A stretch of 64,000 nucleotides of DNA, from contig BCKQ01000002.1 of the NCBI GenBank assembly GCA_001600695.1, positions 1,899,434 through 1,963,433 of the forward strand. Reading direction: 5' to 3'. Source of the stretch: Ascoidea asiatica JCM 7603. Lineage: Eukaryota > Fungi > Ascomycota. The stretch's first letter is position 1; every line of letters starts with the position of its first letter. Below, piece by piece: positions 7,853-57,797 of the stretch. Position numbers and translations under genes: made by a program. Under the pieces are notes generated by a model that searched no databases, was not told the origin of the DNA, and saw nothing but the letters and a program-made list of their open reading frames with translations.

Positions 7853-8394
7853 TTTTAGTTAGTTATTGATTATTATATAACAGATTTAAGATCTTAGATT
7901 ATTGAATTGAGCAAATGAATTGATTGACTGATTGATTGAAGAGAATTGTATTGAAGAATTGTATTGAATAGAATACTTGATTGATTTACAGATATATATA
8001 AATATATATAATTGATTAATTGATTAATTGATTGATTGATTAATATGATTATTGATTAGCTGTTTAAATAAAGGTTTAATAATAATTGAATTGATAATAA
8101 GACAAAGACAAAGACAAAGAAGACAAAGAAGACAAAGAGAATGAGAAGATGAGGACAATGAATGATCTGAAGCTGGCTTTGCGTCTCTGGAGCTTTGGAG
8201 CTTTGCAGTTTTGCAGCTTTGCTCGTTCGTTTCCTCGCAAACTTCAACAGCAGCAGTAAACACGTAACGAGAACAGCAGCAGCATCAGCCACACTTCAGG
8301 AATCAGGACAAGTGCGAGGACAAGGAGTGTCCTGAGATGATGTATAAATAAACCAAAAATAAATACACAGAAATAAATAAAAAAAAAAAAAATA

Positions 8395-8468
8395 TGGTCC
8401 CTAGCAGGATCGAACTGCTGATCCCCGCGTTATTAGCACGATGCCTTAACCAACTGGGCCAAGGGACC
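8395..8468 (-). tRNA. tRNA-Ile(AAT)
   Basis: Reverse complement GGTCCCTTGGCCCAGTTGGTTAAGGCATCGTGCTAATAACGCGGGGATCAGCAGTTCGATCCTGCTAGGGACCA; cloverleaf, A/B boxes, downstream T-run. Confidence 0.96.
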
Positions 8469-8727
8469 AGATAATTTAATCATAGATATTCATAATCGCA
8501 AAATTGAGAACTGGATTATTTTTCATTAATCCTTAGATATGGGAAAACTAGTGGTAAATCTTAAGATAATAAGGTTAATAAGGTTACTGGTCCATATACT
8601 ACAGTTTAAATCAGTATAAATATCGATATATAATTATTGAAATGTTTGATAATGATAATTTTTCCATTTTTTTTTGCTTTTTTTGCTTTTTTTGCTTTTA
8701 TTGGTGGCTTGAAACAATTGAGAAAAT

Positions 8728-8778
8728 ATGGAGATTGATTTTAGAACAGTGAGTGTATTTGAATACGAATATTAATAT

Positions 8779-8809
<31 letters not shown>

Positions 8810-9277
8810 TAAATAATGAGATTGAAAAGTTATTAATTATACTAACTGTATGATTATTATTATTATAATTATTATTATGTCAAGTCCGTTTATGGAGAAA
8901 GTAGAGGTGGACATCATTATTGTATTGAATTTAAAAGAAATCCAATAAGAATAGTTGCATATTATTCACAATTTTTAAATGGACTTGAATTTCATTTTAG
9001 AGATTTTGCAAAACAAGAATTTGGTAATTTAACTGGTAAAACTTCAATATTTAATTTACAAGAAGATGAATTAATAACTTCAGTAAATTTAAATTTTGGT
9101 TTATTCATAGATTCAATTCAATTTTTTACAAATAAAAAAAGATGTTCAAAAAGATTTGGTGGTACTGGTGGTGGTAATACAACTGTTGAATTTAATGGTA
9201 AATTAGTTAAACTTTTTGGTAAATGTGGTGGTTTAGTTGATTGTATGTGTTTTGGAACTATTGATGAAAAATTGTGA
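8728..9277 (+). CDS. Single-domain jacalin-like (beta-prism I) lectin, 137 aa, two exons (8728-8748, 8885-9277); missed by the ORF track
   Basis: Exon 1 MEIDFRT; intron GTGAGT...TACTAAC(8840-8846)...AAG; exon 2 SVYGESRGG...EDELITSVNLNFGLFIDSIQFFTNKKRCSKRFGGTGG...LFGKCGGLVDCMCFGTIDEKL*. Confidence 0.85.
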
Positions 9278-9613
9278 CCATAATAACAATAACTTGTTAA
9301 TGAGAATTAACTATCAAGTAACTGTTAACCAAATAGAAATAGAAATAGAAATAGAAACAAAAATAATAATAATAATAATAATAATAAATGTGACTTACGG
9401 GGTATCACACGGGGTATTTTTTATAATTCATTCCGAGTTTCGACCTACTAGACATCATAATGCGGCAAACACCGCTAACGCACAGATACTTTTATTACCA
9501 CTTTTGCGGTACTGCGTTTGCTTAGCCACATTGAACTATTTTTTATTATCACCATCCTCGTCAGTGGCTTTTAGCCCCGATGTCTTTTGACAGTGTGGCG
9601 CGCCCTGGTCCAC

Positions 9614-9639
9614 TGACGTCAAGAACGCGAGTGACGTAA
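9614..9639. promoter_or_regulatory. Tandem CRE (ATF/Sko1-type) sites in the GC-rich RCK2 promoter
   Basis: TGACGTCA at 9614-9621 and TGACGTAA at 9632-9639. Confidence 0.6.
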
Positions 9640-10458
9640 AGCGGTACAGGATCCACTGCGAGTCTCAGTCCCAGTCCCAGCTATTTCTGCTTCTTCTGCT
9701 TCCTCTGCTTCCTCTGCTCTTGTTCTTCGTTTCAGTCCACCAACCACCGCATTTCTACCGCATTTCTACCGCATATCTACCGCATATCCACTGCTTCACT
9801 ACTTCACTACTTCACTTATCAACAGTTCTTAGATTTCAATCTCATTTCAATCTCATTTCATAAAACATTATTTATTCAAATTTCAATTCAACTCATTTCA
9901 ATTCATTTCAATTAATCTTTAAATTATTAAAAGGTTTAAATACAAAACTTCTTCTCAAATTATTCATAAAATAAAGAAACTAGCATTTATTCATTTATTC
10001 ATTTATTCATTAGATTTTATTACTAAAAAAGTATAGAAAGATACAAATATTTGTACCTTTTTCCTCAAATACTCATCTTATCAATAATATTTTCTCAATT
10101 TTATTTATTATATAATTTTTTTTTCTTAAATTCATCATAAAACATTCATTAAAACATATTAATCTGAAATTTTTATTTATTTATTATTTTAAAAATATTT
10201 AAATTTTTAAACATTTAAAAGTATTTACTTTCAAACATCTAAATACAAAATACATCTCATTCTTAATAATCTATTAATAATACAATAATAATATAATCAT
10301 TTATTTCATTTCATTTACTCTCTTTATATTTATAATCATATATAGACTTAAATTTATTTATTTATCTATTTAGTCATTTCCTCTTCTTTTTTTTTGTAAA
10401 TCTTTTTTTATAACATATTACATTCATATATATTAATTTAATTTAATTTAATTTAAAA

Positions 10459-50276: not shown

Positions 50277-51584
50277 TCAGTAAGGAGCATAATTGAATCC
50301 TAACTCATCAATTTCATCTCCATCTTGACCATAGAATCCAACAATTTGAAATCCTGATGGTGCTGTAAATGTGGTACAAGTACCGGATGTCTTACCTGCT
50401 GAGACAGTGTTGCCATCTGAAGTGGTTAATTTCAAATAGAATACTCTGGTGTGACTACTATATGTATCAACACAAGCATAAGCTCCAGTTAAATATTCAC
50501 CATCTGTTAATGTTAAAGAATATGCATCACCTCCAGTACCACCATGAGAAAATACAGTTCCATCTTCAAGAGTAAGAGATACAGCATCTAATCTATTGGC
50601 TCCTCTTAAGGTTACAGACGAAGTCATAGAACCTTCAGCAATATCATCAAGATCATTGAACCAGGTACCATGGAATCCACCAACAATATCACTTTGTTTG
50701 AAGGTAGAGGATAAGGTATAGGTGAAATTGACTAGAACTGGGTTATGATCAGATAAAGTACTACCTTCATATTCAAACAAAGTACTTTCATAATTGAAAG
50801 CATTGGCAGTAAGAGTGATGGCCTTACTACCTCTGTAAAGGACTTTGTCAACGGTTTCACAGGTATTGTTGGCAGCAGGATTGTCACATACCAAAGCATC
50901 TGCTCCTTGGGCTGGAGCTGAACCATCTCTGATCAATTCAACCCATGCATCAGTCATATCATTTTGGGTGCCGAATAAACGAATAACATCAGCAGTTCTG
51001 GTGTAACGAGAATTGGTGTCACCGAACACAATAACAGCATCTCCATCGGCATTTGCATCAATCCAATCAGCAACTTGTTCAATGTTATCTGCTCTGGCCT
51101 CGTTGTCGCCATCCTCACTTCCTGCATCCGTATGGAGATTGATGAAATCAATATAAACTCCATCTTCTAATCTGACCTTCATATATGTGAACCCCTTTGG
51201 AGTCAAACAATCATTTTCAGAAGCATCAGAACAGTCATCCCATTTGGTTCTACCGAAATTGATCCAAGGATAATTGGATAATGAATTCAACCCAGAACCA
51301 ATAGCTGCACCTCCAGAAGTAGCGGTTCTGTATGTATGGTCATCATATTCATATAAAGTTGAATGGTAGTTGAAATCCTCTTGAACATGAATAACATCTA
51401 ATTGATCCTTATATGTTGAAAATAAGGATCCGATTTGGGTGGTGGCAGTAGTTTTATCTAAACTTTCATCATTACTTTGAAGAACTTCAGGTAACCCAGC
51501 TACATTGAATGAAAGAACATTGAAAGCACCATCAGCAGCAATTAAACCTGCGGAATAAAATGCGTATAAAATTGAAGTAAGCAT
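50277..51584 (-). CDS. Secreted EEP (sphingomyelinase/DNase I-like) phosphohydrolase with a C-terminal jacalin-like lectin domain
   Basis: Hydrophobic signal peptide; FNVAGLP, QEDF, PKGF, NLHTDAG, FGDTN, DKVLYR, LSDHNPV; jacalin motifs GGFHG, RLDAV, HGGTGG, LTDGEYLT, IVGFYGQDGDEIDELGF. Confidence 0.85.
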   Translation of the reverse strand: MLTSILYAFYSAGLIAADGAFNVLSFNVAGLPEVLQSNDESLDKTTATTQIGSLFSTYKDQLDVIHVQEDFNYHSTLYEYDDHTYRTATSGGAAIGSGLNSLSNYPWINFGRTKWDDCSDASENDCLTPKGFTYMKVRLEDGVYIDFINLHTDAGSEDGDNEARADNIEQVADWIDANADGDAVIVFGDTNSRYTRTADVIRLFGTQNDMTDAWVELIRDGSAPAQGADALVCDNPAANNTCETVDKVLYRGSKAITLTANAFNYESTLFEYEGSTLSDHNPVLVNFTYTLSSTFKQSDIVGGFHGTWFNDLDDIAEGSMTSSVTLRGANRLDAVSLTLEDGTVFSHGGTGGDAYSLTLTDGEYLTGAYACVDTYSSHTRVFYLKLTTSDGNTVSAGKTSGTCTTFTAPSGFQIVGFYGQDGDEIDELGFNYAPY

Positions 51585-57285: not shown

Positions 57286-57797
57286 TTAATCTTCATTTGA
57301 ACCAAAACTGATAGCATCAATGAAACCACCTTTTCTAGCAGTGATTTGAACTAATTTACCATTTAAATCAATTTCATGTTCAATACCACCATTATCATTA
57401 CCAAAATAAATTGATTCATTATTTTTATTTGTAAAAAATTTAATTGCATCAACATAATCACCAGATCTTAAAATAATTTTATTAATATATTCATTATCAT
57501 CAAGATCTAATTCAAATTCACCTTTTTCACCATTATTATTACCAATTAATTGATTATGATCATCATCTTCATAAATTAATTCAATTCCATTAATAAATTC
57601 TTCATAATAAACATTAATTTGTTTTAAATCATCATTAATTTCAATAGATTGTTCATCTCCACCTTCTCCACCATATTCAATCTAACATATAAAAAAAAAA
57701 AGAATGTTAATATAAATTAAGTTATATTACTAAAGATAACTTTAATAACTTATATATATAACTTATATATATAACTTACTGTTTGTAAATCAACCAT
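57286..57797 (-). CDS. Second single-domain jacalin-like lectin, 137 aa, acidic; two exons (57780-57797, 57286-57681); missed by the ORF track
   Basis: Exon 1 MVDLQT; intron GTAAGT..TATTAAC..TAG (57682-57779); exon 2 IEYGGEGGDEQ...NEYINKIILRSGDYVDAIKFFTNK...LNGKLVQITARKGGFIDAISFGSNED*. Confidence 0.88.

Follow-up and report, generated by a model that had tools for sequence, protein, structure and literature searches.

A probable two-exon jacalin-related lectin gene of the yeast Ascoidea asiatica and two dispersed paralogs that share its intron position

In a window of 64,000 nucleotides of Ascoidea asiatica, by which we mean the whole stretch of DNA that was analysed, we found at positions 8728-9277 (+) what is likely a genuine two-exon gene, here called gene A, for a jacalin-related lectin of 137 aa that consists of one domain of the beta-prism I type. 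It belongs to a set of three dispersed paralogs, A, B and C, which have kept an inherited intron. Gene A is probably a real small gene that had so far escaped annotation, and it gains its start codon only by splicing.

The two exons and the predicted 137-aa product were obtained by direct reading of the DNA. Exon 1 (8728-8748, +) comprises the seven codons ATG GAG ATT GAT TTT AGA ACA, which encode MEIDFRT, has an A at position -3 of the ATG and is followed directly by the donor GTGAGT (8749-8754). The predicted spliceosomal intron (8749-8884, +) is 136 nt long, lies in phase 0 after the Thr codon ACA and contains the branch site TACTAAC in its perfect yeast form (8840-8846). Its acceptor, AAG at 8882-8884 instead of the usual YAG, is the first AG past the branch site and lies 39 nt downstream of the branch A; with the next in-frame acceptor candidate, exon 2 would open on a TAG codon. 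Exon 2 (8885-9277, +) contains 130 codons plus the TGA stop codon (9275-9277), and the entire exon is one jacalin-like (beta-prism I) domain. This is the layout, with MEIDFRT and a phase-0 intron after ACA, that an earlier note on this DNA had described. With a donor of the GTRAGT/GTATGT type, TACTAAC and a downstream AG that restores the frame, the predicted intron shows all the features of a budding-yeast spliceosomal intron.

A TAA at 8843-8845, 13 codons before the acceptor, limits the frame of exon 2 on its upstream side, and no in-frame ATG occurs before residue 120. Consequently, the domain can be translated only after splicing, and a caller that looks for ATG-started open reading frames cannot find gene A, exactly as the note had claimed. 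A stop codon is expected every 10-12 codons in the DNA around gene A, and the 143-codon frame around exon 2 is nevertheless intact, which at the local base composition would happen by chance with a probability of about 1e-5 to 1e-7. The splice signals by themselves tell us nothing. Triplets of donor, branch site and acceptor were observed three times in the window versus 15.6 ± 5 times in shuffles, and because shuffled AT-rich sequence contains them at least as often, such a triplet alone is no evidence for an intron. Hence, the gene model of A rests on the open frame, on the integrity of the domain and, above all, on the conservation among the paralogs.

Upstream of the gene we read from the sequence a TATA-like box (TATAAATA) at 8615-8622 (+), 113 nt before the ATG, with a T-rich tract at about 8660-8710 between this box and the start codon. 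The box would be the core promoter of gene A, so that transcription may start from near 8615; splicing from 8748 to 8885 would then join the mini-exon with the start codon in phase 0 to the domain exon. Another ATG at 8642 is out of frame and opens a 36-codon frame (8642-8752, +) that overlaps the start codon of A. As this ATG follows the TATA-like box by only 27 nt, it probably precedes the transcription start, and it is of consequence only for transcripts that begin upstream of 8642. In the surroundings, a tRNA-Ile (AAT) gene lies 260 bp upstream on the opposite strand (8394-8469, -), GC-richer islands at about 8000-8340 and 9390-9900 flank the AT-rich gene, and microsatellites are found in the intron ((AAT)n, 8775-8815) and just past the stop codon ((AGAAAT)n followed by (AAT)n, 9335-9395).

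The second copy, gene B, lies about 48 kb away from A on the other strand. Its exon 1 (57780-57797, -) encodes MVDLQT; the intron (57682-57779, -; 98 nt) reads GTAAGT … TATTAAC-like branch site … TTAG and is again in phase 0 after the Thr codon ACA; exon 2 (57286-57681, -) comprises 131 codons plus TAA and encodes a strongly acidic jacalin domain (PF01419, E 1e-16). The predicted product has 137 aa, as that of A. Both proteins are 36% identical over 123 columns, with E 9e-24 in BLASTP with compositional matrix adjustment, and the alignment contains the common blocks YY..F.NG.E, D.I.FFTNK, NGKLV and GG..D...FG. We could thereby substantiate what the note had said about this pair: the matching first exons, the common intron position, each of the four blocks, the spacing of roughly 48 kb and a paralogy that stays significant after correction for composition.

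A third copy, gene C, was found on another contig, C15 (locus L004). There, exon 1 encodes MDYQT, a phase-0 intron of the form GTAAGT … TACTAAT … CAG follows the Thr codon, and exon 2 opens with R-E-Y-G. In all three genes exon 1 reads M…(Q/R)-T, and the alignment column at which exon 2 opens is identical (Thr / x-[V/E]-Y-G). The common junction column means that A, B and C received the intron from a single ancestral gene; since none of the copies has lost it, they arose by duplication at the DNA level and not by retroposition. CTG codons are absent from all three genes, so that a possible non-standard reading of CUG leaves their translations unaffected. After the jacalin domain, gene C (L004:1373-2181) additionally encodes about 105 aa of acidic C-terminal tail rich in Asn and Glu, whose weak Pfam match (CTD11, E 0.0015) lies below the cut-off and is probably compositional.

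The identity among A, B and C is 32-44%, and they are each other's best BLASTP matches. Searching all six frames of the complete 20.3-Mb assembly with Pfam revealed six places with a jacalin domain. When the whole assembly was searched with a profile made of A, B and C, only these three members were recovered, with 198-213 bits; the match that follows, the jacalin domain of a metallopeptidase, reaches 64.6 bits (E 1.5e-16). The proposal of a dispersed and old, or else fast-evolving, family is in line with these identities and with the third gene of the same layout on contig C15, while the count amounts to three genes and not to a large expansion.

Exon 1 of A, with its 7 aa, offers too little sequence for a search. 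Exon 2 alone served as the query throughout and as the input of the fold prediction, and properties were scored per exon. Exon 2 of A matches the Pfam family Jacalin (PF01419) with E 4.8e-12 and 46.9 bits, at a gathering cut-off of 22, over profile positions 10-133 of 136; as in B, this is the sole Pfam match. The best AlphaFold2 model is all-beta with 10 strands (pLDDT 88.5, pTM 0.82); it was the one confident model out of five, the remaining four having pLDDT values of 49-54. Foldseek places this best model next to banana lectin, griffithsin, Calsepa, Heltuba and ZG16 with TM scores of 0.73-0.83 and a probability of 1.00. Additionally, the A/B/C profile matches Parkia lectin, griffithsin, banana lectin, PPL3, Horcolin and ZG16 in the PDB, with E down to 1e-10. 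The model thus predicts for A a beta-prism I fold of four-stranded Greek keys with three-fold arrangement, and the glycine and aromatic positions that define the fold are retained. On the basis of the Pfam, AlphaFold2 and Foldseek results we agree with the note that A is a jacalin gene.

The motif of jacalin carbohydrate sites, GxxxD together with Gly-rich loops, is present in A. We found GLFID in repeat 2 and GGLVD in repeat 3, with GG and GGTGGG loops, which align to GDYID, GDYLD and GGSGG of griffithsin. Pseudo-repeat 1 lacks the Asp (SQFLN), which is also the case in B (EEFIN). According to the alignment, two out of three candidate sugar sites are hence kept in A, two in B (GDYVD and GGFID) and one in C (GDLID); in the last motif of C, GSFIN, Asn has replaced Asp. 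Since two motifs of A are intact and the third is without Asp, the layout corresponds to the two-site arrangement of banana lectin. A most likely binds glycans of the mannose or glucose type. Because the predicted protein has no hydrophobic N-terminus or signal peptide, it is most likely cytosolic. The product of gene A would accordingly be placed, in terms of function, among cytosolic single-domain lectins of the mannose/glucose type.

Regarding the chemistry, A is the outlier of the three: it is mildly basic with five Cys, in contrast to the strongly acidic B and C. The pI of exon 2 of A is 8.62, with 16 Lys and Arg against 13 Asp and Glu (net +3). For exon 2 of B, scored without the last Asp codon, we obtained a pI of 4.07 with 9 against 30 (net -21) and no Cys, and for exon 2 of C, including the tail, a pI of 4.09 with 17 against 50 (net -33) and one Cys. 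The five Cys of A (C13, C86, C114, C119 and C121), three of which bracket the C-terminal GxxxD loop in CGGLVDCMC, had been correctly listed before. The note had further contrasted a Lys/Arg-rich A with a strongly acidic B as opposite chemistry. This is right for B; A is just mildly basic and not rich in Lys and Arg, so that the contrast was overstated. The suggested charge complementarity between both proteins is weak, with a net charge of about +2 to +3 on one side and -21 to -23 on the other.

To find relatives outside of the assembly, we searched large protein collections. The word-index searches, which see only proteins of 72-228 aa, gave no match either with exon 2 of A or with the A/B/C alignment. 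An exhaustive profile search through 1.84 billion representative proteins furnished 1550 jacalin proteins and among them no close relative of A, B and C. This collection does not contain the proteins of the assembly itself; two single-exon proteins were looked up exactly and neither was found. All matches above 100 bits are multi-repeat proteins. Among the best 150 of the 1550, the best single-domain match is P0040 with 80 bits, which is generic jacalin similarity. We ruled P0040 out as an ortholog, as its contig comes from a eukaryote with introns of about 25 nt and a multi-repeat jacalin gene; at this locus (L007:2526-3462, a JGI metagenome contig) the AT-rich DNA carries the multi-repeat jacalin gene adjoining a G-alpha gene. 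Of the other near matches, those that were looked up come from protist transcriptomes, from Tilletia and Pyricularia, and from metagenome or run assemblies.

In the careful tree, A, B and C form a group whose sole further member is a long-branch metagenome row (support 88/77), and B and C form a pair (98/73). NG86 gave dN > dS for A-B and A-C. We rejected positive selection as a reading of these values (dN 0.48-0.77 vs dS 0.32-0.56): with a GC3 of 0.02-0.08 the synonymous sites are compositionally pinned, and for this reason the diversifying selection implied by the note is not demonstrable from dN/dS.

The question of where this family came from leads to the YIL108W-type metallopeptidase (PF12044 plus PF01419), which is conserved in Saccharomycotina, has hundreds of orthologs across budding yeasts and other Ascomycota and contains the nearest jacalin domain in the genome outside of A, B and C. 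The representative in this genome (L006) shares 58% identity with the corresponding protein of Ascoidea rubescens. Among the named budding-yeast proteins found by our searches, the jacalin domain occurs only in this architecture. A itself does not belong to this type: none of A, B and C contains a peptidase domain, all three fall outside of the well-supported clade of metallopeptidase-type jacalin domains, and in A the open frame of just 143 codons contains no PF12044 domain N-terminal to the jacalin domain. The three genes could nonetheless descend from a duplicated C-terminal jacalin domain of such a metallopeptidase, a scenario that concerns the origin only and is compatible with the reading of A as a functional lectin gene. 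We consider it possible but on balance doubtful. It is favored by the 64.6-bit match given above, which is the closest non-family match in the genome and is 29% identical to A, by some metallopeptidase-type domains that are the best outside matches of A (35-37% identity), and by the AU test on a 48-row set, where a position of A, B and C beside the metallopeptidase clade is not rejected (p-AU 0.78) and scored better than the quick free search. The careful tree argues in the other direction: A, B and C lie outside of the clade of the metallopeptidase-type domains (support 100/99), within which the copy of this genome pairs with the one of Ascoidea rubescens (98/96), and among the other jacalin domains the three genes are without firm placement. 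Given this exclusion, such a duplication would have to predate the sampled Ascomycota, or the copies must be evolving very fast. The family is no recent copy of this genome's own metallopeptidase domain.

Other jacalin genes of the assembly gave some side observations. At L006:232-1836 (contig C5), the ATG-started ORF of the metallopeptidase has 534 aa, while the open frame has 690 aa and the orthologs about 680 aa; the true start must therefore lie upstream, perhaps again behind an intron. In our window, an EEP-jacalin gene (50277-51584, -) encodes 435 aa in a single exon, with an endonuclease/exonuclease/phosphatase domain (PF22669, E 7.5e-22), a C-terminal jacalin domain (E 1.3e-19) and a hydrophobic N-terminus. 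Its GC content is 0.386 and its GC3 0.25 vs 0.02-0.08 in the small lectin genes; its jacalin domain is 16% identical to A and was missed by the A/B/C profile. On contig C10 (L003:1489-1836) we found a partial copy of this gene, which covers the last 116 residues (the jacalin part) at 87% identity. It contains two in-frame TAA stop codons and the locus some N; probably, it is a recent pseudogene fragment.

The unusual features of A raise the question of whether this gene is still functional. It could be a decaying or silent duplicate of an acidic gene of the B/C type, a pseudogene in the making, in which five Cys and a charge unlike that of the paralogs reflect relaxed constraint. Indeed, A has the weakest PF01419 score (46.9 bits vs 62.1 and 54.6 for the other two small genes), a non-consensus AAG acceptor, the out-of-frame upstream ATG and a long terminal branch of 1.2-1.5 substitutions per column, which is far longer than that of B. 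Yet the branch of C is comparably long, that of A being about equal to it or longer. Moreover, decay does not fit well with an intact 143-codon frame of such low chance probability, a canonical donor and a perfect TACTAAC, the retained fold positions and both GxxxD motifs, or with the confident best model, and we thus regard a dying gene A as unlikely. That the intron of A is not removed at all and the region is non-coding or gives just a short peptide, so that the gene model is wrong, agrees with the AAG acceptor and with the abundance of splice-signal triplets in AT-rich sequence, but we hold it for very improbable, as mini-exon, intron phase and junction column are common to three paralogs, the domain starts exactly at the junction and there is no alternative start.

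We now compare A, as a probable gene of a three-membered lectin family, with known systems. Like the plant mannose-specific lectins BanLec, Heltuba and Calsepa, A has a single beta-prism I domain of about 140 aa without a signal peptide (TM 0.75-0.83). With banana lectin it shares, as judged from the motifs, two candidate sites and the combination of GxxxD and Gly-rich loops. Unlike these plant proteins, to which it is only 17-23% identical, A comes from a budding yeast and has Cys flanking the C-terminal GxxxD (C-GGLVD-C-M-C). The best sequence match among solved structures is griffithsin from the red alga Griffithsia, with E 5e-5 when A alone is the query and 1e-9 with the profile of the family. 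Each griffithsin domain carries three intact sites (GGSGG / GxYxD), and the protein is a domain-swapped dimer; A is not of this type, since repeat 1 lacks the Asp (FLN; FIN in B), and in A another residue stands in place of the Tyr of GxYxD. Stand-alone jacalin-related lectins of fungi, as A would be, are otherwise represented here by those of Grifola frondosa and other Agaricomycetes, which are basidiomycete mushrooms. Jacalin-like lectins are reported from Grifola frondosa and as being widespread in Agaricomycetes (PMC8227253). In full-text searches of the literature, jacalin and Saccharomycotina occurred together only in one paper, on Taphrina infection of Arabidopsis, and no link between jacalin and YIL108W was found.

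We propose that one ancestral, intron-bearing gene gave rise to A (at 8.7 kb), B (at 57 kb) and C (contig C15), which would later have diverged in sequence and charge. About the biological role one may speculate. Cytoplasmic fungal lectins offer an analogy for defence against grazers. In this sense, A might bind foreign glycans after ingestion or cell damage, a role that we suggest with less than even confidence; binding of self or foreign mannans could be an alternative. A survey of fungal lectins likewise stresses defence against feeders (PMC8227253). A more far-reaching idea is that A, B and C form a lineage-specific family of stand-alone cytosolic anti-grazer lectins of Ascoidea-type beetle-gallery yeasts, in which the basic, Cys-bearing A is neofunctionalised. 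We find this improbable. If it were true, a redox- or metal-sensitive sugar site might follow, as the Cys bracket the GxxxD loop; alternatively, A might have a different glycan target, and assembly with the acidic paralogs would also be possible.

In summary, fold, motifs and gene architecture of A are all of known kinds, and A is a lineage-restricted addition to a well-known kind of lectin. The consequences are modest and no concept is changed by the A/B/C family. With its start codon in a mini-exon, A illustrates that single-exon gene calling under-counts small genes in an intron-richer yeast lineage. Finally, a family of three stand-alone jacalin genes in an Ascoidea-type yeast enlarges the repertoire of fungal lectins, and with pI values from 4.1 to 8.6 the three proteins are a compact natural set of charge variants of one lectin fold, useful for binding studies.
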